Shown here one piece after another: positions 12,424 to 51,400 of a stretch of 64,000 bases of DNA. Below the pieces are notes generated by a model that searched no databases, was not told the DNA's origin, and saw nothing but the letters and a program-made list of their open reading frames with translations. A program made the translations under genes and the position numbers. Numbering within the stretch: the first letter of the stretch is position 1; every line of letters begins with the position of its first letter. Source of the DNA: Thalia democratica (lineage: Eukaryota); the NCBI GenBank assembly GCA_965202585.1, contig OZ241834.1:30752001-30816000 (forward strand), read 5' to 3'.

Positions 12424-15400
12424 TCAATCGTCAAGTTGGCAGAGGGCCGCCACCCCTCTGTTAATCCAGTGACTTTGACGCTTTTTACTGGGCAATTCAA
12501 TCATCATCACAAAATTTGTCGAGTGGCCTGAAATGTATTGTAACATTGTTATAAAGTGCTGATAATATAAATAATACAAATTAATATATATTCTTATCTA
12601 AGCATAACATACATAGTGAAGATAGCAAAATTATGAAAACTTTTTAAAATTGTTTAAATAATATATCTTCAACCCCTAAAACATACTCCAACTTTATAAG
12701 AACAGTTCAAAGTTTAACCCAATATAATAAAAAACGCATTCTTCTTTTTTAGATAAAATAAATATTCTCGAACTGGTAATATTAGTATGCTACTTTTAAA
12801 ACTAAAAATAAACATTACATAGTAAAATTTGGAGTAAACTAAAAATTCTAAAAGTTAAAAAAAGAAAAGGTTAATAAAAATTATTCACCGTATTTAAAAA
12901 AAAATCAAATCTAATACTGTTAGGCAAAAAAAAACAATTATAAATAAAAAAGTTACCAGTGGTTGACAGGGTTCCCCTGCGAGCGCTGGTCTTGTACACG
13001 GGACACGTGTAAGTCTTCCTCTCCTTGAAGTCCTTCTTCACGCCCGGCTGCAGCCACAAGATGGGCAGCTGCTCGAACAGGATCTTGGGGTGCGACTCGG
13101 CCACCTCGTTCGTGTCCTGGCACCATCTGGCGCCCTCTATGAACAGACCCTTCACGTACACCCCTGTATTATTTGTTTGTGTAGTTTTTGTTTTTAATGT
13201 AAAATGTTTAAAAGCAGTTTTGTGTGATTAAATTGCTAAAAGGTTAAAAAAAATTAAAATAAAACTAAATTTTAAGCATTATTAAAACATAAAGCAAAGT
13301 TTTTGCATAGATAAAAAAAATTAAGTTTCGTAAAAAACAAGCGTATTTAAAAAGTTACTACTCATTATAATTTAATCAATTAATTTAAGCTTTTCAAACT
13401 AATAGTATCAGAGTTAAACTTTTTAAACTTTTTATATATTTTTTTTATTTTATATACTACGAGTTGGTGATAAAACACTTTATCTAGCTAAAATAAAAAC
13501 TAAAAAAAAATGTCTAATTGCTATAATATATAGAAGAATTAGCTTTTTTGATAGTTGTTTGCGTTGTGTTTTAGTTTAACAGCTTTTCTATAAAACAAAG
13601 CTTTTGGTTAATTATAATTCTAAAAAAAATTAACAATTTTGTCGCATTGAAAAATTTAAATGATTAAATAAGGTTTTAACCATCTTCGGGTTTATTATAA
13701 ATTCCACTTTCAGAATTGCAAAGAACTTCAAATTCAAAACCGACATGGTCTATTGGTATCGTGTATCTGTTAAAAATTAAATTTATAAAGTTTGTTTAAT
13801 AATATTGGTTAATTAAAACTAAGTAATTTAATTTTTTTTTAATTTATATATTATATATAAATTAGATTGGTTGTTTTTAATGCATTAACTTGGATCTGAT
13901 TTTAATAACAATTAATTAGAAATAATAGTTATAAGTTAGCAAATATAAAGAAAAAATTTTAGTTTATGCAAAATAACATTTGTTACTTCTAATTTTGAGA
14001 TAGCACAAGTTAGTTAGTAACGAAATGGGATAAAAATAGATTTCAGAAAAAGTTATTAAAAAAACATTCCTTGTGTTTGAACAATATTCCAACAGTAAGT
14101 GTACAAGTAATTCCTTTGTTTTAACTCAACTAACTTTCTGGAGTAATTTTGAGTGGCGCCGGTCAAAAACGACTGAGTGAAATAAAATCCTGAAATCCAG
14201 AAAACATTGGGAGTTCCTTCTTTGATCCATTTGTTGAAAAACTGCAGGCGAGCTAGCAAGTCTGTTGCAAATATTATGAAGTATTATATATAATAAACTT
14301 ACTTATGCAACAATACACATACTTTCAAAAAAATAAATAACAGGTCAAATTATAATTTACTTAAAGTTTTTAGCAATACCATTTTGTAAAATATAAGTAT
14401 TGAGTAAAATTAAAGAAGTTAATTTCCAAAAAGGTTTACATAATTGTTTTTCAATTGTAAACAAACTCAAGACTACTAAAAAACTTTGCTTTTTTTATTT
14501 GAAAGTTTGTTTTGCACATACGCTTGCCATATACGTTTAACAAACCCTCACTGACAAACCAATTAAAACGTTTTACCGGCGATGTAGCCACCCAGCGGCT
14601 TGAGGCTCGGGTAGGATTTTGCGGCCCACATGTTGGGAACCTTGCCGGTGAGCATGGAGTTGAAGACCTCCTCCAGCTCGGAGTTCATCACCACCAGCCC
14701 CTTGATGGCTTTGCGGAGTGACTGGAGCGAGCTTCGTATCACCACGGTAAGCCGGTTGAACCTGATCAGCTCCTGTCTGTTTTGTTAAATATTATTGATT
14801 GTTTATTATTGTTTGCTGGTACTTGGAGAAAGGTTATCAAAACTGTAAAATAAATGGTTGAAATTAAACGAAAGGTACTTAAAGTTTACTACAAGTCGAC
14901 TTATGCGTTATATTTATTTTCTAATTATTTTGAATTAGGTTTTTATTGTACAATACAAATAGCTTTTTCTATAATTGAAAGATACTTTTAGTTTTATTAC
15001 AAGCTAATATTAAACAACAGTATAAAAGTTTCATAAGACAAATGAAAATACACAAAGAAAAGTTTTTACTCATAAGTGAAGCATATTGAGTATTGAATAC
15101 TTTACAAAAAATAATATAAAAAAATGAGCTTGAATAGTGATTTGTTTATAAAAGCTTGGTAATTCGTTCCTATTTGAAATTAAAATGAAAGATGGGATTT
15201 TTAAAAAAGTTATTAAAAAAAAATATAATACATATGTAGTAAATACCTTAGAACGGTGTTCATGGATTCGGTGTAGATAACCGGATATTTCGTCATCACC
15301 TCTTCCAGGTCGAAATCAGCAGGAAGTTTTTCCAGGATGTCTCCCGCCAAATCGTCGATGACCTCCTCCGCCGACTTGCCCCCTCCGCCCTGTTGCCGCG

Positions 15401-18400: not shown

Positions 18401-21400
18401 CGGCTCGATGAACGGCTGGCCCATGTGGTCCACGATGTACTGCTGGACGGAAGGGACGACTTTGTCCGGACGCAGGCACCTCACCACCACCATGCGGTCC
18501 AAACCCGACAAAAGTTCGAACTCGCCCGGAAACCTGGAAAGTTTTCAGTTTTTTTTAAAATCACTATCACCAATATATCACTTCAAGTTTATCTAAAAGG
18601 AATTTGTTGTAATAGCTAGTCTTTCAAGCTTATAAATAATACTTTTTTTATAATAGATCGTGTTTTTTTAGTATTTAGAATTTATATAAAAGTTTTTACT
18701 TCTAATACTAATTTAACTAATAAAGCCTCAAAACAAATTTTTGTAAAAAAAAAAACACTTATGTGTCTAGCTTATATCAAATATCTTAACTTTTTACAAC
18801 TGATCAATTGATGTCTCTTAATACTAATAAGCTTTCAAAACACACCAAGCTACTTTTAAACACATTAGCTTTTATTTATAATGAAAAAGAAACATTAACT
18901 GAAACAATAATTTAAAAACTTTTACTAAAAACTTACTTTTCCTCGTGGGGGGTGGCAGAATCGTACACGGCCCGCCACGACCTTATCTCTTCCTCGAAAT
19001 TTTCCCTGAAACCCTGCAGGCCGGGCAGCTGCGACGCCCTCACCACCTCCGACCACGCTTTGTCGGCCAGCCACGAGGGGGCGGGGTTGGGGTGAGGGTT
19101 GTCAAGGGCGACGCCTCCCGTCAGAAAAAATCTCCATGCAGCGTCGTCGACATTTCCTGTAAGAAAATATTTTGCTAAATACTTAAAATAGAGTGATATT
19201 AAAATAAATTTTAATTACTCAACTCTGTATTTTTATAAAAATGAACCAAGATTATTTTAACGTACTTGATTGTTTATTTAAAAATAGTATTTAAATAGCT
19301 TAACTTTGTTGTATAATTTAAAATTATTTTGTACTAAGTATAAAACAGTTGTTATATTGTATATATTATTTACAATATTTTACTGTAAAATGCATTTATC
19401 GATAATCTAAACTTAATATATTTTATTATCAAAACCTTTGTTAGATTGCAAAGCAATGGTGAGTACAAATGAGAAGAGAAGTTTGTCTTTTTCGAACAGT
19501 GATCTGCACACATTCTTGTAAATGCTGTCTGTGAAGTGCCTGTTCAAATTTGCTATTCTTTCTTCGAGATTAGAAGAACCTTCGCTGTTTCTTATCGACT
19601 GTTTTATTGACAGTTATTACAAATCAGCACATAAAAGTGGTTCAGAAAAGTTCAAAGTTATCTGAAAAGTACTAATAATAAAAAAACTATTAATAACTAT
19701 GTTTTAATCATTTATGATACTTTAAGATTAAACAAGTATTTAAGAAGAGTTTTCTTATTTTTATACAAAAAAAGACAAAAAAAAAGAAGATTTGTCTCAT
19801 TCCTTCAAGCGAGCAACAAACGCACGTTGAGGTAGAGGTTGATGAACCAGGCGAGGGAGTACTGGTACATGGGCTCGATGTTGGCCAGGTCGCTCACGCA
19901 GAAGAAGATGACGGTGGAGTGGACCGCCACCGGCTTGTACCCGATCCGCGTCTCGTCGATCACCTTCTCCGTCTCGCTGGCCACCTGCTGCTTGGCGGTG
20001 ATCTCCTCGGAGAGCACTTTCGACGAGGAGAGGATCTCGATGGCCGTCTCGTCCTCCAGGATGTTTCCGTCCGAAGATAGAACCTGATTGGTTGATTTTT
20101 TGCTAAACACTGATAGTAAAAATCGTAATTTTAATTTTTCTGGACTTTTATGTAATGTAGAAAATAATTTTATTAAAAACCACGAAGGTTGCATCTATTA
20201 GTTTATTAATAATATGAAAAATAATAATTTTAGTTTTATGAAAAATAAATTGAAACTAAATTACATCAAACCACTCATTAGTAGCTTTTTGTTAGGTTTA
20301 AAGTCTTCAGGTTATGATTACTAGCTCAAAAAACTCCAAACCAAATTATACCAAACACTAGTTTAAAAACCAGATTTATATTTTGAACTAATAACAAGTA
20401 AGTTATATACCATCAGAATTTTGTCTTCGATGTTTTGCAACTGGCGTTTGTTTTCGGCGCTTTCCAAAATCAACTCGTTCTTTTTAACTTCGAGCTCGGG
20501 TTTTTCTTTGGCGGCCACAATGCTCAGAAGCTGGTCTTGCAGTCCAAGCGGAGTTATCATGAAGTTGACCAGGCACACCTGGAAGTTATCGGTAAGTTAT
20601 TTAAGTATGAAACATAAAACATTAAATTATGAGAGTCTACTAATTTAACACTTTGCTTAAAATATAATTATATAAGACTAATTTTTATTTTGAAATATAA
20701 AAAAAGAAAAAAAAATTGTAAATATAAAACGATTAATTAAACTATAGGCTTAAACAAATGTTTTTTTTTTGTTGACTTTTGAAAACTAATAATTGATAAA
20801 AATTTGTTGTCTAAAAAAATAAAATTCTTTCTGAAACTTATAAAGCTGTTACCTTGACGGACACTTCGGGGAGGTAGTGGGGGTTCCTGAGACCGGTGGT
20901 CATGTAGAACCTGAAATCTTGCGAGTACTCGACGCTGGAGTCGCCCAACATCATGTACTCAACGCCCTGCTGCTTGTACGTCTGCTTCAACAAAACCGAA
21001 TCCAGTATCGCGTCTATCTCTTCGCCTGCAAAACGTTTTCAAGTAGCGTTAGTCTTGTTCTGATGTGAATAAAGATTGCATAAAAGATCTAAAAATCTAA
21101 ATTTGTTATTTGTTACTTTAAAAACATTGAACATTAACTTTAAAATTGTTAGTTTTTAAACTCAACTAATAACGAAATTTCGACACAAAAAAAAAGTTAG
21201 GTTACTTTTTTATTCTTAAAGTTTTCATTTTTTTAATAAAAATACACATTGATGGCTTGGCTGTTATTTCTAAATTCAGCCGATAGTAGAAACACTCGAC
21301 TTAACAAACTCACGTACCCAAGTTTTCGAGCAACACAGGGTGACCGTACTGTATGGCGCTTTCCAGGGTTCTGACGTAGTTGGCGTCGGAAAGCTTTATG

Positions 21401-24400: not shown

Positions 24401-27400
24401 TTAGTTTGAAAATATTTACTTTTATATCATTATTATACTTATTTATATTACTTATTTATATTACTAGTTCACCTGCTGGCTAGCAAACTGCAGTTTTTCC
24501 AGCCCGTTCAAGTATCGGTTTTGCAGCCCCTTCACCTCATTACGCTTCTCTTCCAGCAAGTTTTTAAACGTCAGTATGAGTTCCAAGTACGAAGTGGGGG
24601 TTACGTACGTCTTCCGCCTCAGCGAGTTCCAAAATTTGTCCGACAGGTGGCGCACGCTGCACGTAAATTTAAAGTGCAATGTCTTTTTAGTATAACATGC
24701 ATTTAGTTTCAACTAGCTTTTTGAGGATTGATTGTAATGGATTTGGAGTTTTAAAAGTAATGGGGCATAGGAAGGGATATATAACTTTTTTCACAATTTG
24801 ATCTTATTTTATAGAGTTTTAACTAAGCTACGAGATGTTATTTACAAATTTAAAAAATTCAATACATTTTTTTGAGATATAAAAGATCAAAGTTGGAGGT
24901 TTCTTTTGAGAAGCGCGAATTAAAACCGCGAAAAAAGACTACTTCACTAAAAATCTACCTTCTCCTACGTTTTTTGAGATAAATACCTCAACAAACGTAG
25001 GAGAAGGTAGATTTTTAGTGATTTCTATCTATATGCCGTTTTAGTTTACGCTTCCCATAAGGAACCTATTGTAGCCTCCGACTTAGACCGGCTATATCTC
25101 AAAATTATTTGAGTTTAAAAAATCTGTAAAAAGTAGTGATGTACCGGACTCACTATCCGGGTCCGGCCGGATATTGCCATTTTTGTCTGATATCCGGATC
25201 CGGCCGGATTCTAATTTGAAAAAAAAGTCCGGATCCGGTTCCGGCCGGATTCTAATTTGAAAAAAAAGTCCGGGTCCGGTTCCGGCCGGATTCTAATTAA
25301 AAAAAAAAGTCCGGATCCGGATCTAGTTAGTAAAAAAGAGCATACTGAAAAGTATTTTTTAAAAAACAAACCCTGAGTAAATTAATAAGAGTCATTTTCG
25401 TCAGTTAAAATTAAACACCTACCGTGATTGGCTCATTTTGTACACGTGACTAATTTACATTTGTTTACATTTAAACTATGAAATAAACATTTCATGAAAT
25501 AAAACTCTTTACATATGTTGTAAAATTGAAAACTTTGAAATGAACACTTGCATTTTTTATTGTTTAAAGTTGAGCTCAGAGAATATTTAGAGTTAAAACG
25601 GTTAAATGTACGAGCAAATGAGAATCATATGACGAAATATTTGAAACTAAATACTGATGCAACAAAACATCAGAACATGACAGGCAGTTTATATGTAAGC
25701 AGTTAGTTAGTTTGGTGTGTAGCTTGAAGCAACAAAATATCTTGAACGTTTTTGTGAATGCTTATTGTAAGTAGTGTTTTGTTTTAAAAGTGAATATTTC
25801 AACAGGTGTTTAATTGTTTAAATATTTAAGCCAGGTTTATAGTTTAATAGTTTATTAAAAGTTTTACAGTTTCATGTCTACTAAAAGTTTTATTTAATTT
25901 TTAGTTTTTTGTTTTAAGTCATTTGATATAGATTTAAATAGCTTCCAGTTTTTAAAGTGTTACCAAAGTAATTAATAATTTTGTATATGCTAGTATTTCT
26001 TGTTGTGTTTTATATAAAAGATTCATCACTCAAAACTGTCGTGTCTGATTATAGAAAGTAGTCTCAGTTAGAATTTAGTATTTGTTAGATATTTATTAAA
26101 TAAGGTAGGATTTAATTATGATGGGTAGTACTGATAAGTTAAGTGTACCACAATCAGTCCACAACTTTACTACCAAATTGTCAACCTTTGCTAGCTGTTC
26201 TACTGATTATTAGATTATAGTATTTTTTTCAGTTTTTAAAAACCTCATTCTGACTCAGGCTTGTTTATACTCACTCTAGCTAGTTTTATTGACTTAAACA
26301 GTAGAAACCCTGCTAGTTTGAAAATTTTTGGGAATTTTAGAAAATCTTGGACTGCCTCAGGCTAGTTTAGTTTTATATAAAAACTCAGGCTAGTTTTCTT
26401 TTAGATTTTGAATAAGTTTGAGCTGATCCAGTTTTCAATATTTTGTAACTTTCTAGTGTATTTTGTTCAAGAACTTGATTTCAGATTTTTAATTGTAAAT
26501 AACACCTAAATTTGTAAACCTTGTGGCTAGCTGTTCTACTTATTATTAGATTAAAGTTCTTTTTTTTTCAGTTTTTAAAAACCTCATTCTGACTCAGGCT
26601 AGTTTATTCTAGTGATGTACCGGATTCACTATCCGGGTCCGGCCGGATATTGCCATTTTTGTCTGATATCCGGATCCGGCCGGATTATAATTTGAAAAAT
26701 AAGTCCGGATCCGGTTCCGGCCGGACTCTAGTTTGAAAAAAAAGTCCGGGTCCGGTTCCGGCCGGATTTTAATTTAAAAAAAAAGTCCGGATCCGGTTCC
26801 GGCCGGATTCTAATTTGAAAAAAAAGTCCGGATCCGGATCCGGCCGGACCCGAAATTGTGGGTCCGGTACATCACTAGTAAAAAGCAACTTGTAGCTTAG
26901 TTAGAACTAAATAAAATAAGACTAAATTATGAAAAAGGCGATTTCTCCCCCTATGCTTTTTGTTAAAAATATAAAATAAAATCAATCTCATCTTAAAAGT
27001 TTTTAATTGTACTACAAAACATAATATTTTTTACACCTCTCATGGAAGTTCTTGCACATTTGCACGCATTTCTGCCTGATATCGTCTTCGAGGTCAACAT
27101 CAGCGAGAAATCTGTGAGCCACAATCTCCAACGCGTCCTCTGGCCACGCCTGTTGTGTGATTTTTTTTAAATAAAAATAAAAGTGTTTCCAAGTTCTGTC
27201 TGGCCACGCCTGTAACGTGTACATACTAACATAAAATAGTAAGAGTATTAAAATACTTTCTTTTCGTCATTCTTGTCAGAAAAATGTCATGAGATGTTTT
27301 AAACCAGTCTATATAAATAAAAAGATTAAAACTAAAGTATGAAAGTCTTCCAATTGATTTCGCTTGAGAAATAAATAAAAATTTATTTTAAATTGTTTTT

Positions 27401-39400: not shown

Positions 39401-42400
39401 TAGTAAGGATTTAAAAAAATACCCATTTTAGGTTAGAATGTTTTTCCTGAGCTTGAGTCTGGTTTTGATTTTTGATTAACAACCCTTTTTGCTTTAAATT
39501 TATAGTTTAGAATTGTATATTTGTTATAAATTTGATATTTCAGGTAATCAACAAGTTTGCCACTTAATCAGAATAATCCTGGATACTTTAAAATTTTGAA
39601 AATCTCAGTATGACATAATATAACTTGGAACATTTTAAATTTCTTTTTTAAACCCAGGCTGACTCAAGGTAGTTATTTTTATCTCAGTATAGTTTTAAGA
39701 TTTCAGGCATTTTTTTTCTACATTTTGAATGAGACACAGTTAATTTAGTCCCAATAATTAATTTTGTAATTTTAGTATTTTTTGCTGAAGATATTTGTTT
39801 TTCTTGCCTTTGAAAATAAAATAAAAAAAATGAAAAAAACCTAGATGACTACAGTTCAGTTTAAAAGTCATTCAGGACAGTCTTGATCTGTCAAATCAGT
39901 TTTAACCAAAAGGATTATAATCCTGTAAAACTAATTTAACAGTATGTACATTAAATGTTTGACATAATAAAAAATGTTTTTTGTTTCAAAGATAAGCAAC
40001 CCTGGTCTTAAAATATTTAAATTCTTATTTTTTTGCAAATTATTGATTGTCCTTTTAACTTTTTTTTTGCATATTACATCTTTTACTTACTAAAAATCTG
40101 ATTTTAAATATAACTTCTTTTATTAAACTAAGCTAAAATAAAAATTAACACAATAATAATTTTAAATATTTACAGTAAGATATCAAATTTACTGTATATT
40201 ACTTATTTTAAACCAAATATTTTACTTATGGTGGTTTTTTATATTTTTTATAGAAATAAAATGTTTTATAAGTTTAATCAGGACAATTTTTTTAAAGCTA
40301 TAAAGTATTTTTTTAATATTGATTAAACTAGATTAGAAATCAGTAATGACATTAGTTTTTTGATAAACTTTTTACACACTCAAACTTCTTTGGATAACTA
40401 TTATGTTATTTTAAAGGTCGGAAAACTTTGGCAAAGTAACTTTTAAAAAGATACTTATGCTGAGACATTATACCTCAATTGAAGAACTTACTTGACAAAA
40501 GGAACCACAACCCAGTAGCAGTTCTAATAAACAGCTCATTATGGTTAGATAGTTTAAGAATAATAGGTCTCTCGGTATTTTAGTCTCTTAATTACACTAA
40601 AAAAAATAAAAGTCAATGTCTCTTCTACTAATGTTGTTACATTTTTAAATTTTACAAAAATGATTTATTCATTTTTATAAGTGCTTAATAACTTTTGAGA
40701 AAAATCTAATTATTGTTATGTTAACTTTTATTAATTTTCATTAATTTAATTGTTTTTTTTAAATCATTATCATTTTAATTAGTTTAAAAAATTACTTGTT
40801 TTTATTAGTAACAGCTTTTTTTTGCTTTTTTTTTTTTTTTGAACGTTGTAGTTTTATTTTCTTTATGTTATAGCTCATTTTTATTCTTACTTATTTTAGT
40901 AAGTTAAATAGTAGAATCCAAATTCTTAAACATACTTTTCAAAACTTAAATATATATAAGTCTTGTTTTTTTAAGACATGTAAAAGATTAAATTATTGAT
41001 AAGTTTTAAATTTAAAAACCTTTCAGGTTAAAACTTTACCTTTTAACGTAAAGTTCAATATAGATTTTATGTGTGTATGATGTTAGATACTGTTATATAA
41101 TTTTTTGTTTGTTGATATTTTAGTTTATAAAAAATAGTTAATGTATTAAATTTTAATAGTCTCATTTTAAAAAGTTTTTTGTTTTAGAGTTTGAATTTTA
41201 ACTGTTAAGTTTTTTTAAATAATTTTTAGCTCATTATAAATTTGATTAAAGTTGGGTATGCAACTCGATGACCGAGAGGTCTTTTTGTGTATCCAAGTCC
41301 TTCAACCAAAAATAACTTTTGGGCATATAAACCTCATTAAGACCTGAATTATTACTAGGCATTAACTTTAAAACCTAAATTTTAGGTTTATTCAGACTCG
41401 TGCTAGCAACAAGACCAACAAAGACAGTTCCAGGTCAACAAAACGGATTTAGCTGTGATATGATTTTTTATGTTTTTTTTCGTTACTTTTTCGTTACTTT
41501 TTGGTGTAATTTTTGTTTTCGCTATTTTTTCGTGGCAATGCATTTGTTAAACACATATAGTAATCGCTTAATAAAAAATCATTAAGTAAAGTTAACTAAA
41601 TAATTAAAATTACCATGCAATAAAAAGTACCAAGACTGCTGATTGTTAATTTGGATTGTGGTAATCTAGTTAGTATTTTAGACTTGGGGGATACAAGTAA
41701 AATATTGTTGTAAAAATTAGATCATTGATATAAGTTTATTAAAATGGATAGGGTAAAGTGGTCAATTTTAAGTTAGCGTGTAAAATTAACTGGGTGTTCT
41801 CGAATTATTAGTAAATAAATCGATTGAAAGTATTTACATATTCTTCAACACTAGCGGCGCTAAAGAGTGAAAATTGGGGTGCACCGAATTTTAATTTTGT
41901 GATTAAGGGTTCACGAATTCAAATTAGCGTGCCGACCACTGAACTAAACTACAGTTAAGATGTTTCTAAGAATACAACTATTGATTCAAAAGCCCATCAT
42001 TAACGCTTGGTTGTTCGAAACATTCAAGCATGATGGTTCATAACTTCAGCTGCAACTGAACAAAAGTCGTAACCTCTATTCTGTTGAACTCGTCGAAGCA
42101 GGCCCACGCGCCGCACGAAGCCAGTCCCTTGAAGAACTTTCCCATGGCCTTGTAGTCGAGGCCGTCGGAGCAGTTGAAGACGACGCACTGCTTCGCCAGC
42201 GCCTTCGCCAGATCCTTGGTCGTCTCGGTTTTTCCGGTACCCGCGGGTCCTTCGGGCGCTCCGCCCAGGTTCAACTTCAACGCTCCCATCAACGTTCTGA
42301 GGTTTTAATGTAAAATGATGTTTAAAAGTTTAACTGGTAGAGTAAAATAAGTTAAGACTAAAATTCACAATTACATTACCTGAAACTTTAGTGTGATATA

Positions 42401-45400
42401 AAAGAAAGATTAGTGAGATAGTTAAGTTTTGATAACTTCTTGTTAATATTATGGAAATTAATAAGTTCAACAAAGCATTTTGAGTAAAAAAATATAAACT
42501 TTTGTTATGATTACAATACTTTTATGAAAATTTATAAAAAAGAACACCTAATATAGCCATGAAACTTTAGCTATCCACAGACTATAACCAAAAGAGTTTA
42601 TTTAGTATAAGCTCAACTATAACGGCCGTATTTCAAAATACCACTTTCAATTTAAATAAAAGATATATACTGTGATAAATAAAATTGATAAATTTCAACC
42701 CACACAACATATATTCATATAACCATATCTAAATACCTAAGTGAAATGCCTTTTAAAAATTTAACTTTTTATTTTTTTGAAACTAACCGGTAACACCTAT
42801 CCGTCAGCGGGGTGATGACCAGTCTGGGGGAGTTCCCCAGGTACTCGTACCCGTACAAGTAGTCGGTGGTGATCATCTGCACGCGGATCTGCCCGCCCTG
42901 CCGGTAGTACCTCAGCTGGGAGATCCAGTTGAAGTCGAGGCAGTCGGAGATGCCCAGGTTCACCAGTTCCGCTATGACGTCTCGCGCTGTTCGTTTTGTT
43001 TGGTGAATTTTGTTTGGTGTTAAACAACTTACTTTGTCTTAAATTTTGTGATACATACAAAATAAACACGGTTTACAAATCTAGTTTTTAATTTATAATT
43101 AAAATCAAAAACGGTAAAAAATTTATTTAATTAATATAAATGAGGTTAACTAATTATATAAACTTCTTTAAACAAAATCAAAATTTGGATTTTTTGTGAT
43201 TAGTAAAACAAAAGTATTAATAACTAACCATGGACATCAAGCACAGTAAGGGCACCAAGTGTAACTCTGGCTCCCTTGTCCAATTTTCCTCTGACCAAAT
43301 CCACAATGTCGTTTATCTGGTCGTTCAGTTGACCGAGATAATCCTTAAAAATTAGAGACATTTTTGAAAAGAGATATATTTATAAGTATCACAAATTATT
43401 TTAAAATACTTTTTATAAACTGTAACATTCGTAATTAATAATTGTTTTCAAAAAAATAGAATTTGTATTGAACCAGTACATATCGCTGAAAAACTGTCTT
43501 AAAAATATATTTCTGCGTTTGTCTTCACAACTCAGTATTAACACATACATAACTATAGTTTGTCTTAAACTATACGTGCTAAAATAGTATAAAAAATTAC
43601 AACAAGATTAATTGAATAGTTTAAAACTTTAAAGAACAATATCCATATGACAACTGACAGCAAGCTTGTTTTTGGTGATGGCTTCTTCCACCTCGCAGGT
43701 CCAGTAGTACTGGGACACGACCAGAATGATCTGGCCCGCCCACTCGAGCACCCACTTTTTGCGGTGGTTCTCCGCGTAGGACAGCAGCGATTTCATCACT
43801 ATGCTCTTCAGGCTGTCCAACATCGCCGTTTCCACCTGAGACAACCACTTTTCTACCATTCCCTGAAAATTTATGATGACTACTTTGGCTTTTACGTTGA
43901 TTTTTACTTACGACGTGTTTAAACTATACAAGCTAGTGTTGGTTCATCCATAGTATCATTAGTTCAAATAGATTGTTATTATAACTGGAACATTTTTTAA
44001 TTACTAAATTGTTAGTAGATTTAATTATCAGTAAAAGTTAAAACAAACTCAACTTATACAAGTCCAAAGTAATTATAACTGTATAAATCCAGAAACTAAC
44101 TTTATAAAAAAACTCATAAAACTTATTTATAAAACCTTTTTTGTGTTACTACTTGGGTTATTTTAACTAAAAATTGTTTTTAACTAGTTATAATTGACCA
44201 GAACAAGCAAAGAAGAAAGTAAAAGAAAAGATCAAAATATTTCACACAAGTTTACATTTAATCTCACGAACATTGGCTTTCTGCGGGTACAGCTTGTACA
44301 TGAAGGGGACCGTCTCGTCTTCCGCGCTCGTCATCCCGGTGATCTCCATCATGTCGGTGAACTGCAGCCTGTTGATCCCTTCGAAGCACTTCTTCAGGTG
44401 AGGCTGCACCCTCAGCGGGTCCTTCGTTTCGGACAAGATCTCAAGCAACTCGTCGTTTGAAAGGAAGAAGAACCTGCGTTGTTTGTAAGCTGTATTGTAT
44501 TAAACTTGTTATTTCATAAAAGTGTTTTTTTAAAGGTTACATAAAAGTAATACAAAAGTTTATACAAAAGTATACAATTCTGCGAGGGTTGTAAAGGGTA
44601 GCAACATAATGCTTTTAGCAAGATAGTTTAGCGCAAAAATATCAATGTTTAAAAAAAAAGTTGTAAAATGGAACGTTTAAAAATAAAACTCATAAACTTT
44701 AACAGCTGCTAAGCAAACACCGCTGCCAATTAATTAAGAAGCTAGTTTAACTTATTTACATTTTGAGTAAAATTAGTTTGTGCTTATGAATATTTTTCAA
44801 ATAAACTATTCAACTTGCTTGTCTTAAATATATGTTTTGGTCGAGAAAAAGTGTTTGAGGGTACAAATAAAGTAAAACAGTTAAAAAATTATACCAGCTA
44901 AAAAATTTAAAATTTGTTGTAATAGCAAAACAAAAATTATAGAAATTAATAGAAACTAATGACAACAGTAACACCAACACACAAACCTGGGAAAGAAAAC
45001 TCTTTTCTTTTCCAAGTACGCGTTGAGACCTCTTTGAATTTCGTCGAGAAGTTCGTTGGCTTCTTGCAACCTTCCCAACATGTTGTTCTGTGCCGTTGCT
45101 TGCAGCACTTTCGTTTGTTTCGCCTAAATTTATATTTTTTAAATAAACTTGTGAGAACCGCATTTTCTATCAGAATCTTAATATTTTTCTAGGGACATTT
45201 GTCTTATTTTTTTTAATAATAATAAGTTTTAAATTTCAAATGTGAGAAATGTAATTTAAAATAGTTTGGTCACTAACAAATCAATCTATGTTTTGAGACA
45301 AATTGTTTTTATTTTGTATAGGACTATGATTTTAACAACTTTTTTTCTAATTAAAGACTTAACAAATTATAAACGTACTATAAACGACACATCTAATATA

Positions 45401-48400
45401 AACAAACAACTCACAGCTTGGGTCATGATGTCTTTCCAGTACCCGTCGACGATTCCGAACTTCCTTCCTTCTTCCGGCATCTGAGCGAGGATGTCGGCCG
45501 AACTGAATATGGGTTCCAGGTACATCCAGGTGGCCTGACACTTGAGCCACTGGTCGAATATGTCCTGCATCATCGTCAGCTTCGATTCCCACTCCTGTAC
45601 AAGCAAGATGTAAACAGTTTTTTATATCACATAAGCATTAAGTTTTGTTTAGAGCGGATATCAGTGTTTATTTTGAGCTATTCGTTGACTTTTTTTTTTA
45701 ATGTAAACTTGCTTCCTTTGTATTTTAATTTTTATTTTCAGACTTAAAAGTTATGTTAAATATAAATATGTATATATATTTTTTAATTATTATTATCACT
45801 AATAGTGCATAATAATTTACTATAAGTAAGTAATTTAAGTTTAAAGTATTTTTTTAGATCTTTACAAACAGCTCTTCTGTACCATATTACGAAAAATAAG
45901 TTTAGTAAAAATATGGTTAATAACACTTACTTTTTTTTATTAAAAAATTGTTTTTGTAAAGCTGTAATATCTTGTTTTTATTATACCGATTGATAATGAA
46001 AGTTTTATTCTATCTTTTTATTTTTTTAAGTAAGTAATAACATCAGTCTTTTGAAAATATATAGAAAGTTTTATACCTGTACAGAAATATCTAATGGTAT
46101 TTTACTTATATACAAAAAATAATTTAAAACTTTAAAATAGTTTTAAAAGGAATTTTAAAATATGTACTTTTTTAAAGAACAGTAGTTTTAGACTGGAAAA
46201 AATTAAATTTACTATTAATTACTAATTTTTTATATAATTTTTATTTGGCTATTACTTATACAAACTAATGAAAGTTAGATATTTAGTATTCCTATTTTCT
46301 TAAGCTTTTTTGACAATATTTAAGCACTTGTTTTCTACACTTTTTTACCTTTGCTTCGTTTTCAATGGGTCCGATATACGGAGAGTTTTTCATCGTCAGA
46401 CATTTTATCACGTGATCATCAAGCAGCTCCATGATTTCATCAACAGAAGACAGGATGTGGATATCCTGATTGGATTAACAATACGTAAATGTCTTTATAC
46501 GATTTTCTCTTTTTGCTTTTTCTGTTCTGAACCTGCTTATACTAAAGATCTGCTGCTGGTAACGACTTTTCTGCTTTTTTCTTTCTAATCTTTGTTTTGT
46601 TTTAGTCTTTTATTCTGTGTCTTTTCATCTAAGAATTAGCTTTTTATGAACTTTAAAATTCTGAGTATAAGAAAGAAACTCAATTATGTACGTCATTTCT
46701 AGGGTCTTTTTCTATCTAGCGATTACATAACTTTCCTGTTTTTTCATCTAAGTACTAACATGTTTTTCTTACCCAGAGTTCTAGAAACTAAGTCTTAGAT
46801 ACTAAATTTAATTACAACTAAGCTGAACTAACTGTTATCTCGTCAAGGTAAGGGCTTATGTAAGGTGATCCCTTCATAACTAAAACTTTCAACTTGTGAT
46901 CGTCTATCAGTATCTGAGTCTCATCTATTGACCCTAATATTTTGATACCCTGACAAAAAAATAATCTGTTTAGTCTTCTTTATTACTTTTATAAACTAGA
47001 TTATCTTTTAACATCAACTGCTTATGTAGTGATATGAGCTGACTATAAAACGTTATCAAACATTAATCTCAAAAAATAGCAATACAGGCTCATAGACTAT
47101 AAACTAGCTATTTGTTAAGTTATCAAACTTATACATTCCACTGACTGTTTCTAACTTTATAGTTGACTGAACTAAAACTGAACTAAGCTCAAAAACATTA
47201 GAAACATTTTAAGTAAATTTAGTTTGTTAAAATAAGTTTAATAATACAACTATAAGTTTTATAGTTCATGCAATAAACGCAAGCATTAAAGTTATTTAAT
47301 TTTAATGCACATAATTCAACTACAAAAACTACATGTTGTATACCCAAACAAGTATGAATAAACTAAAGTACACTAGACTATTGGTTTTTTGAAACAAATA
47401 CATTTAAATGTAAATATTCTTTAAATTACTCTATAGATAAAAATAACAACAAAATTCTTTGATTTTTCATATGAAAAATAGAAAACAATCTTTAAAAAAC
47501 ATGTAGGTAAAAACAAACTCCTTAAATAAATATAACAACATTTTTTATAGTCAAAAATAAGTTTAATATTAAAATAATGAGAAATAAAATATAAGACAAG
47601 TGAAGTTTCGTTTATATAAACAATCTACTTTTTATAAACTGAAAACACTAAATAATACTTTTAAAAACTTTTATTCAAAAAAAATTTTAACAACATTCAG
47701 CGAAAAAAACTTTATTGCACTCTTATACTCTTACTTAAGTATTTTTTCAACAGTGATTAGCGAAAGCTATATTCAAGCACTAAATTTTTCCTACACAGCT
47801 CAACATTAACTAGTTTTAAAACACAAAAAATAATTAACACACACTAGTTTTAACTTAGGTGAAAAAAAAGCTGAGACAACACAACACATGCATTTTTTAT
47901 ATGTTAAACACTAGTTTTTATTGTTAACCGAGAAAACATTGCTACGTAACTACGTATTTACGTAATAAACTCAAAACTAGTGTATATTTTTAAAGATTGC
48001 AAAGCATTATTAAATTAAAAAAATTATACAAGACAGTTTGGAGTGTAACACGAATTACAATCGAGTCAAAGCCATAACACTTTTAGAATATTTTCATAAA
48101 ACTTAGGTGAAAAAAATATTTCAAACTACGTTATGGTCAAACAGTGGCAACCCTGTTTTATTTTACTGATCAGTAAGAACGAATTAGACTTAGCTTTTAT
48201 TAACTAGTTTTTATTTGCTTTTTTATTTGTTTTTTGATTACTTAGCTGTTGGAATTATTAAGAAAAGCATTATTTTAAAAATAAAACAATATTCGGGAAA
48301 GTTTTAAAAGTATGGAGGGTATTTTTTCTTAGAAACTAAATAACTTTAACTCCTTTGATGAAGAAGCAAAAAATAATGAATGGTGTCAAGACCCATGAAG

Positions 48401-51400
48401 TTAAAAAGTTCTAAATGAGACTAAATGAGTTCCTATATGAATCATGTTATGATGCACACTTAAATATCTCACACTATTTTCTCCGTACGGGTTCAGCTCG
48501 ATATTCATGTCCTCCCATTCCGAGTACATCTTCTTTAATCTGTGGTCCAGAGACCACTCTTTGCTGGCCTTAGCCCCAATATTGCCTATTCTGAGGTTAA
48601 TTTTTGATATGAACTTCTTAATTTTAAGATTAAATAACAATAAAATATCTCTCTACAAGCTAAATGTATGGAAATTTCTGTAAGTTTACTTTGTTCAAGT
48701 AAACCATAACAATTGTATGCAATGATATATGAAACTTGTAAAGACTTTAAATGTGCTTCTAAATGACATGACTTAAATGTGAACAAGTGTCTACAGATTG
48801 CTAAACTAATTTCTTTTTGTAGAAAGTAGTGAGTGAGAATTTACCCTTACTCAGGTAAACTCTAAATATTTTTTAACAATTTTAAACAAATGTTTTTGAT
48901 GGCAATCAACCGAAATTTAAACTCAAAAATCAACAAAGTTTAATTACAAACAACAACAGTATGGTGAAGAAATTATTTGTAAAGTTAATAGGACTAGCAG
49001 ATTGATATAAAAATGTCGTTATGCACAAACAACAACGTCATTAAGCAAAGCAAATAAGTTTGTCATGCTAAAAAAATTACTTAATTTTTGAAAAAGAGTA
49101 TTCTATACTAGATTCAATTGACTTTTTTTCAAGTTATTAGAACTAGTAAGTATCTTTATTTTCAAATTTCTTGATATTTCTCTAAAATGTTTAAATACAT
49201 TAACCATAATAAGCAGTGATTTCCAAACTTTTTTTTCAAAAGTGTTTACATTCAACAATTAAGAAAAAACTATGTGGTACTAGATTAGCTAGCAATCATT
49301 TAAATTTGACTTTTAGTTAATTCAACCGGTACAAAATATACTATAACTTAACCGCAAATAGATTTTTTAATTTTCTAAAATAAAATTTATATCTAAATCA
49401 ATTACCAAAAAAAAATTATAAGCACTAAAAAAACAAAAATACAATCTTAAAATACGCACGTGTACCGACTTTGAGAACCACTGCTACAAAACAAAACATG
49501 CAAATAAAAACACAAAATAAACAAATGAAAACAAATGATTCTTATTTTACCGAGTCGCGATACTGGGTGAGTATGAGCTCCACATCCGCCCACTCCTGCT
49601 TCATCTTGGAAAGTCCCTTCTCCAAACTGTACTCCTTGCCGGCTCTCACGCTCAGCTCCTCCAACCTTCACGTGATGACAAGCATGAAAATGAGGGCATG
49701 CAACGAGTCGGTGGTAATTTTGATTAAAAGCTAAAGGCGCGCTATATTTTGAATTTTTATCAACTAGTCCGAATTTTAAAAGTTGTCATAAAAAACTAGT
49801 TTTAGTCTTAAGAAAATATATTTAAAGTAAAATAGTTAAACATGAATAAACAAATGTGATCAGATGAAACTGTAGTCTGAAAAGATAAGTACTTAATGAA
49901 AAACAGCTTAATGAATTCAAGATGAAGGTGAACTATTTAACTTGTAATTCTACAATGAGTTTAGATGAAGCTTTGTAAAAAGAAAGTAAAGTAACAAAAA
50001 CAATCGCAAAAATTTTGTTCAGCAAACAAACTTGGTGACGTATTTTCCCAATCCAAATTCCAGCATGTGCCACAATGAGGAGTCTTCATCGGGTCTCACG
50101 TCGAATCCGACCAAATCACTTATCTTTTTTATTTTAGTTTATGTAGCATTAAAATTTCATACTTTATAGTTTTTCAACAGTTTATTTAGTCCTTTATAAA
50201 AGCTTTTGAAAATTTAAATCTTTTAAATCATATGCCAAAACACATAAAAAAAACATATATTCTTAGGTATTCGTAACAAAAACTATAGCAAACTAATAAT
50301 GTCCTAATAAATTAAAGAGTTAACATAAATATATCTAATGTACCTTTCAAAAAAACTAACACGTAAAACTTAAGTTTTTTATAATTTAGCAAATATAGAT
50401 TTTTAAACTAATAAAAGTTGTCATAAACCATAAAAATAAAGAATGACTAAATTTAAGAGCGCCTGTTGAAAAGTATTAATCCTTTATGATATCAAATTTA
50501 ATATATTCTTATTTAGTTTTCTCACCTATATTTAGACTGACAATCACGATAAAAACTAGACTAGACATAGAAAAAACATAATTTACAAAATACATATCTT
50601 TTTTTTACTTTTTCACAAATTCGGTTTACATTTATCAACAACCTGAACCTCAAACGCAATCGACCAATTTAAACAGTTTTTACTTTAATCAAACAAACAA
50701 CAAAACACCGACCTCGTCCCAGTGGCGATCCTTGATCCCCGGGTTGCAGATGGTGATCAATACGGGCAGGTTCACCTTGAACTTATCGATCTTGTTCTTC
50801 ACTCCCTCGGCGATCCTCCTGGGAGCCGGCTGGTCGCTGAACGTCTTGGACATCTTGTACGCCGCCCTCCACATGGCCTGCAGGTCGTCCGTGATCGTCT
50901 CGGGCGTCAGCTGCTGGAACGGGCCTGGGAAAGTTTTTTTTTTATTTGCTTTGTTTTTAAATGCTTTTTTCTTTACAAAAAGTATGCTCATAAGAGAAAT
51001 AGCAGTAAAATAAAAGTAGTTGCGAACAGTAATTTAAAACGTGGCGTATTTTGCATATTGTTATTTACATTTTAAAATATACAATGCCGTCATTCAAAGC
51101 TGTAACTTTGCAAAACAATAACAGGAATAAAGCTTAATGGTTTGAATAATATACGAGTATCTAAATCCAGTAAAATAAAGTTTAATTTTAATCTTCAAGT
51201 AGTCCAAGTCTGCTACTTCAAACAAAAGTTAACAAAGTTTTAGCATTAGTTAAACAGCAACCGACCGTTCAACCACAGTTCATGGGAGTTATGCCACTTG
51301 AGAGCGGTGGTCCACAACGTCTCATAAGGCTCCTTCTGCTTGAAAAGAACTTGCAGCAACGGAAACTGGGTTTTTTCGCCAAACTCCAACAGCTCTTCAT

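Follow-up and report, generated by a model that had tools for sequence, protein, structure and literature searches.

Introduction

Why does a dynein gene carry one and the same exon in two versions, and does a messenger RNA ever carry both? The question is raised by a stretch of 64,000 nucleotides from Thalia democratica (GenBank assembly GCA_965202585.1, contig OZ241834.1, positions 30,752,001 to 30,816,000), which we call the window and whose own coordinates are used throughout. Its minus strand carries a long gene for an axonemal dynein heavy chain, in which two exons of equal length, here named 22a and 22b, lie in tandem and encode related versions of a single piece of the linker. A further duplicated pair, 21a and 21b (pair 1), lies directly upstream. 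DNAH3-like dyneins are motors of cilia and sperm tails, and the linker is the lever of the motor.

On the sequence comparisons reported here, we consider it fairly likely that 22a and 22b are alternative exons derived from an old tandem duplication and that they are mutually exclusive, each mRNA carrying one of them. In the mechanism that we propose, one exon of a DNAH3-like inner-arm dynein gene would have been duplicated in tandem long ago, giving 22a and 22b, and each transcript would carry exactly one of the two. Either copy would supply the same linker piece: one helix and, after a short turn, the initial 11 residues of a long one. The result would be two variants of one dynein, for example for different ciliated tissues or for sperm. 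The two versions differ at 19 of their 39 positions, several of which are otherwise strongly conserved, and the cell could therefore build two dynein variants.

Results

Exons 22a and 22b form a tandem pair of equal length

The coordinates of the pair and of the features around it are collected in Table 1. A preliminary description of this DNA had reported a second duplicated pair of 117 nucleotides each, in phase 0/0 and with a shared pattern of residues, and our reanalysis agrees with it on the translations, on the AG and GT borders and on the residue pattern, with 20 of 39 residues identical between the copies. The borders read tttttgtcag/GG ... ACA/gttagt for 22a and atccaatcag/GA ... AAG/gtaaaa for 22b. 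Both exons are in phase 0/0 because the preceding exons close on whole codons and the next exon opens with GAG TGG at 45594. Also correct in that description were the order 21a-21b-22a-22b, which was recovered by reading the sequence and by tblastn within the window, and the absence of 22a from the track of open reading frames (ORFs). The latter is explained by the lack of an in-frame start codon: 22a lies within a stop-free stretch of 53 codons, which would arise by chance with a probability of about 0.009 in DNA of about 27% G+C.

At the DNA level the copies are 51% identical, and 26 of the 39 third codon positions differ. For each copy, the only tblastn match in the whole window is the other copy (E 3e-9), and a six-frame tblastn search of the whole window found no third copy of exon 22.

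Both copies are old and retain features of the family

Synonymous sites are saturated between 22a and 22b (proportion of synonymous differences [pS], 0.97; of nonsynonymous differences [pN], 0.36), and the duplication must therefore be old. To judge what each copy has retained, we used an alignment of 146 homologues from a library-wide profile search, in which 30 positions are at least 70% conserved. Exon 22b keeps 20 of these 30 and 22a keeps 17, in partly complementary subsets: G1, Q12 and G27 are kept by 22a alone, and S6, I11, L15, T24, E35 and K39 by 22b alone. The unusual residues L23 and Y30 are common to both. Given such an age, a freely drifting copy would not be expected to show this retention of residues.

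One related species, represented by contigs L006, L009 and L010 of marine metagenome assemblies (Tara Oceans and others), served as a comparator. The substitution pattern shows purifying selection on 22b: on all three contigs the encoded protein is identical, and the 8 changes among the 117 nucleotides comprise 8 synonymous and 0 replacement changes (P ~3e-6). The constant exon 45415..45594, compared in the same way, has 11 synonymous and 0 replacement changes. For 22a, contigs L009 and L010 start with its last 18 nucleotides, which encode YLDEIT and contain one synonymous change. The donor region that follows, gttagttcagcttag, is identical to that in the window, and the intron diverges directly after it. 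Taken together, the end of 22a and its donor show 1 change in 33 nucleotides, versus about 30% divergence of the adjoining intron (P ~1e-4). The conserved exon end and donor point to constraint, and constraint of this kind would hardly be expected if 22a were never spliced.

An exon of the 22a type was also seen outside this species pair. The metagenome contig L008, from a G+C-richer organism, contains a 117-nucleotide exon with the same borders as 22a. Like 22a, this exon has lost T24 and shows the rare states I15 and Y34. The two form a group in a tree of the 39 columns (Shimodaira-Hasegawa-like approximate likelihood ratio test [SH-aLRT], 87, a weak value), and these columns are too few to date the duplication. 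A 41-residue protein query returned no candidate for an orthologue of 22a, scans of Joint Genome Institute (JGI) metagenomes with the open stretches of 22a and 22b gave no matches, and the 22a-like exon P0013, when used as a query, found only itself.

At the level of sequence, these data confirm the pair as a real and old tandem exon duplication in which each copy has retained its reading frame, length and splice sites as well as residues conserved in the family. Both exons look functional by these comparisons, and the evidence is thinner for 22a.

Two tandem copies of this exon were encountered in another organism as well, on the ENA metagenome contigs L007 (381-638) and L011 (100-357). These copies of 117 nucleotides each, GINILGGMDDLQILLDDQLIKCQALRASPYLDAFAESFK and GINILSQIDEIQILLDDHILKCVTMRGSIYLKYIEKRFK, are separated by a gt...ag spacer of 24 nucleotides. 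They have a Cys at position 22 in common with 22b, which is found in none of the 146 other homologues. In the tree they pair together, and their duplication may therefore be independent. In most animals a spacer of 24 nucleotides would block copy-to-copy splicing; in organisms whose introns are tiny, it would be a regular intron. The stored proteins P0001 and P0151 have Gln where the DNA of these contigs has TAG; the source gene caller therefore used a code in which TAG is Gln and read through two 3' splice sites (tatag/GG and ttttag/GG). The Gln residues look like a gene-calling artefact on eukaryotic DNA and not like an altered code.

The copies encode the same piece of the dynein linker

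In the Pfam profile DHC_N2 (403 positions), both copies match positions 171-207, with scores of 21.4 bits for 22a and 33.2 bits for 22b, as expected from the earlier proposal that the pair represents the same part of the dynein linker. The exon before (21a or 21b) and the exon after (exon 23) match on either side (Table 1), leaving no gap for a second copy. Likewise, residues 319-356 of the full-length axonemal dynein P0137 align to both 22a and 22b, and the alignment resumes at residue 359 in the next exon. The two copies occupy the same DHC_N2 positions between flanks that leave no gap, so a normal dynein has room for one copy. Exclusivity has been argued from a family alignment for another dynein heavy chain (PMC3228551), and we use the same argument here. 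The exons do not lie at the very start of the linker model but about one-third of the way in (DHC_N2 133-207 of 403).

Exon 22 corresponds approximately to residues 1030-1066 of human DNAH3 (PDB 8j07, chain g3). An AlphaFold model was made for the homologous fragment P0190 (mean predicted local distance difference test [pLDDT], 83), and it superimposes on solved axonemal dynein linkers with 2.1 A over 93 columns. In this model, exon positions 1-25 form a helix, three residues form a turn, and the remaining 11 residues of exon 22 open a long helix; the junction between exons 22 and 23 lies inside this continuous helix, which the next exon prolongs. Because the last 11 residues of exon 22 start a helix that is continued by the next exon, a second copy spliced in before exon 23 would, according to the model, interrupt the long helix.

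Among the best 150 homologue hits, only 3 contain the exon-22 segment twice. The first is a scorpion protein model, P0061 (XP_023219532.1, Centruroides sculpturatus "dynein heavy chain 3, axonemal-like"), with a long exact repeat that includes the exon-22/23 region; this repeat is most likely an assembly or annotation duplication and not a case of alternative exons. The other two are a low-complexity protein and one metagenomic genomic ORF.

Alternative explanations for the exon pair

Several observations weigh against a mutually exclusive use of 22a and 22b. Exon 22a scores lower than 22b on DHC_N2, and it has T11 and K19 where about 88% of the homologues have a hydrophobic residue (helix positions 11 and 19). 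Its G+C content at third codon positions (GC3), 0.42, is the lowest among the 39 exon matches of the gene, and the interspecies comparison of 22a covers its last 18 nucleotides only. Three sequencing runs contain the locus, and none of them is recorded as RNA. A transcript-derived protein fragment spanning exons 22 and 23 was not found among the proteins searched, which had up to 147 residues. A search with the constant exon gave 298 hits; for the close relative these were genomic ORFs only, and the near-identical hit reads through an intron. No enforcing mechanism emerged among steric block, spliceosome incompatibility, frameshift followed by nonsense-mediated decay, and RNA pairing. As the preliminary description had pointed out, joint inclusion of the exons (117 nucleotides each) stays in frame, and so does joint skipping; nonsense-mediated decay therefore cannot remove the products of double inclusion or of skipping.

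How well do other explanations account for these data? Exon 22a could be a silent relic of the duplication that splicing now skips altogether or nearly always, with 22b as the sole exon used, and we regard this as unlikely. The lower DHC_N2 score of 22a, the replacement of conserved hydrophobic residues by T11 and K19, the lowest GC3 in the gene and the lack of RNA among the runs containing the locus would all fit a relic, and nearly all homologues are nearer to 22b. Yet 22a, despite synonymous saturation, has no stop codon or frameshift and has kept the exact length, the phase, both splice sites and 17 of the 30 conserved positions. Moreover, the related species has preserved the end of 22a and its donor beside an intron that has diverged by about 30%, and a 22a-type exon is present in another organism.

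We likewise give only a small chance to the possibility that 22a and 22b are included together, always or often, giving a 39-residue repeat in the linker, or that 22a is an optional cassette before a constitutive 22b. Inclusion of both would be in frame, the 367-nucleotide intron between them has ordinary splice sites, and we found nothing that would block splicing from 22a to 22b. What speaks against it is the protein: both copies fall on the same profile positions between flanking exons that leave no gap, a genuine tandem repeat of the segment in a protein was found in 0 of the best 150 homologues, and a second copy would, in the structural model, break the helix shared by the end of exon 22 and the next exon. 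Finally, an assembly or duplication artefact can be dismissed almost with certainty, as the copies are only 51% identical in DNA, three independent metagenome assemblies carry the end of 22a, the intron and 22b in the same arrangement, and three sequencing runs contain 58-88% of the sampled words of the locus.

Candidate signals for a choice between 22a and 22b

If each transcript carries either 22a or 22b, signals governing the choice might lie in or near the intron that separates them. With 367 nucleotides this spacer had been considered too long for steric exclusion, and we concur: AG dinucleotides confine the branch point of 22b to about 28 nucleotides before its acceptor, which makes a tropomyosin-like steric block unlikely. 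The related species has a perfect CTAAC in this branch-point zone. Both donors, that of 22a and that of 22b, are U2-type.

The search for docking and selector sequences that could pair across the introns, an idea of the preliminary description, yielded none that was convincing. The sole long-range helix, an RNAalifold pairing between the donor of 22a and internal sequence of 22b, was rejected as no better than dinucleotide shuffles (-12.1 versus a shuffle mean of -14.5 kcal/mol), and the inverted repeats across the four introns (45800-49700) are AT-rich, imperfect and chance-like.

The intron between 22a and 22b aligns over its full length with that of the related species, at about 70-84% identity. 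Within its conserved purine-rich block (Table 1), a run of 30 nucleotides is identical in the related species, and this run occurs a single time in the window, at 46506-46535. On the basis of two species, the block at 46506-46574 is a candidate splicing-control element. Intron conservation in general was considered as a mark of regulated splicing and was not relied on: there is one comparator, neutral divergence is near 30%, and only the 30-nucleotide run stands out.

The introns beside the constant exon (45595-45755 and 45300-45414) show random-level similarity to the related species (contig L012), and the introns around 22b show 65-84% identity to it. Seen with one comparator, this contrast may reflect only local indel turnover.

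Possible coupling with the neighboring pair

The two adjacent pairs invite a broader scheme, in which two mutually exclusive clusters would jointly recode an uninterrupted segment of about 77 residues within the linker's moving part. Free choice in both pairs would allow up to four linker isoforms. In the coupled version, the choice would be linked (21a with 22b versus 21b with 22a), giving tissue-specific motors, for example in feeding cilia versus sperm flagella, with the purine-rich block as the switch. Taken as a whole, this scheme is speculative, and we doubt that it holds in full. The outer exons, 21a and 22b, are more canonical by their DHC_N2 scores, and the inner ones, 21b and 22a, are more divergent (33.2 and 21.4 bits for 22b and 22a; for pair 1, see Table 1). 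This pattern would be compatible with a coupled choice.

A small exon at 50029-50118 (minus strand), between the constant exon 50712-50930 and 21a, seems to end at a weak donor, CAA/gtttgt, in phase 2. Exons 21a and 21b therefore start with one base of a split codon, and pair 1 has phase 2/0 and pair 2 phase 0/0.

The host gene encodes an inner-arm axonemal dynein

The gene that contains the pair extends on the minus strand over at least about 12.9-50.9 kb of the window. Over this range the full-length axonemal dynein P0137 (source name, DNAH7) gives 39 exon-sized matches, all collinear. The linker profile DHC_N2 matches five exons, and an exon with an AAA+ P-loop (GPAGTGKT, about 42041-42304) belongs to the same long gene. 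When compared with solved structures, the constant exon 45594..45415 has its best match in human DNAH3 (8j07_g3, residues 1068-1127; E 9e-27), with 94.9 bits for DNAH3, 81.7 for DNAH7 and 69.3 for DNAH12. DNAH1, DNAH6 and the outer-arm and cytoplasmic dyneins rank lower, and the closest solved relatives are thus single-headed inner-arm dyneins. With the exon-22 profile, matches were obtained at the corresponding places of DNAH7, DNAH12 and DNAH3, the first two scoring slightly above DNAH3. Judged by these matches, the gene is a DNAH3/7/12-type inner-arm axonemal dynein heavy chain. The constant exon ranks DNAH3 first, and the gene is therefore probably DNAH3-like within this group, a choice that rests on one exon of 60 residues.

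The dynein exons (12900-50930, minus strand) have a GC3 of 0.42-0.94 (mean, 0.73; standard deviation, 0.14), and the introns contain about 24-29% G+C. A few exons are much poorer in third-position G+C, namely, 22a, 22b and those at about 19443-19598 and 14134-14271. Low GC3 was considered as a sign of low usage and rejected: 22a has 0.42 and 22b has 0.47, but there are constant exons at 0.44 and 0.48. In two other dynein introns, the open stretches 25095-25381 and 26612-26871 (minus strand) carry nearly one peptide, which suggests a dispersed repeat or the remnant of a mobile element.

Table 1. Exons, introns and conserved blocks around exon pair 22a/22b, in coordinates of the window
Feature	Position	Strand	Properties
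Exon 22a (upstream, more divergent copy)	46833..46949	-	117 nt, 39 codons, phase 0/0; acceptor AG 46950-46951 after T-rich tract; donor GTTAGT from 46832
Exon 22b (downstream, more canonical copy)	46349..46465	-	117 nt, 39 codons, phase 0/0; acceptor AG 46466-46467; donor GTAAAA from 46348
Intron separating 22a and 22b	46466..46832	-	367 nt
Conserved purine-rich block	46506..46574	-	41-109 nt upstream of 22b acceptor
Next constitutive exon (23), ending ...IMTQA	45415..45594	-	DHC_N2 209-268, E 6e-24
Exon 21a, neighboring pair 1	49551..49665	-	DHC_N2 133-169, 31.3 bits
Exon 21b, neighboring pair 1	48473..48590	-	DHC_N2 133-168, 26.5 bits

Discussion

Animals usually diversify their axonemal dyneins by gene duplication. 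The exon pair described here suggests that a single inner-arm dynein gene may take another route and obtain variants by exchanging a helix-turn-helix piece of the lever. If this is true, 22a and 22b would provide a natural pair of linker variants (a quartet, together with pair 1), from which one could learn what this segment of the lever contributes to the tuning of the power stroke or of docking. There would also be a consequence for annotation: gene models should include 22a or 22b, rather than combining both or offering the ORF-bearing copy alone.

Mutually exclusive exons that arose by tandem duplication form a familiar class, and 22a/22b most likely joins it. Exons 2 and 3 of alpha-tropomyosin are a classic example. 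Another is the muscle myosin heavy chain of arthropods (cited in PMC3228551), with its clusters of such exons. As in these genes, the duplicated exons in the T. democratica gene offer alternative sequences for one defined structural element of a motor or filament protein, with length and phase preserved, and there are neighboring clusters of duplicated exons. The difference is that exclusive use was demonstrated by cDNA for myosin and alpha-tropomyosin, whereas here it is inferred from sequence. Furthermore, for some of the classic genes the mechanism is known, either a distant branch point that leads to a steric block or competing RNA pairing; none was found here, and the branch point of 22b near its acceptor argues against a steric block of the tropomyosin type.

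Among solved dyneins, human DNAH3 (PDB 8j07, chain g3) is the best match of the adjacent constant exon, and human DNAH3 is not known to have an alternative exon at the corresponding position. An exon pair of this kind in the linker of an axonemal dynein was not described in the literature that we searched. Alternative splicing of dynein heavy chains has precedents: for some of these genes, alternatively spliced forms of the motor domain are mentioned by Kollmar (2016, PMC5100056), and the cytoplasmic dynein heavy chain of Schistosoma mansoni, SmDHC1, has a mutually exclusive exon (Pillmann et al. 2011, PMC3228551). The T. democratica gene differs from SmDHC1, a cytoplasmic dynein 1, in being an axonemal inner-arm gene of the DNAH3-like type. 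Its exon pair encodes a part of the N-terminal third of the linker, whereas the exon of SmDHC1 lies in the gene's middle part; its exons are in phase 0/0, whereas those of SmDHC1 have split codons; and, unlike in SmDHC1, a second exon pair lies directly upstream. Nevertheless, the two genes have in common tandem homologous exons of equal length, conservation of frame and splice sites, and an exclusivity that is argued from the alignment of the family. If 22a and 22b are indeed used in this way, the small set of dynein genes with reported mutually exclusive exons would gain an axonemal member.

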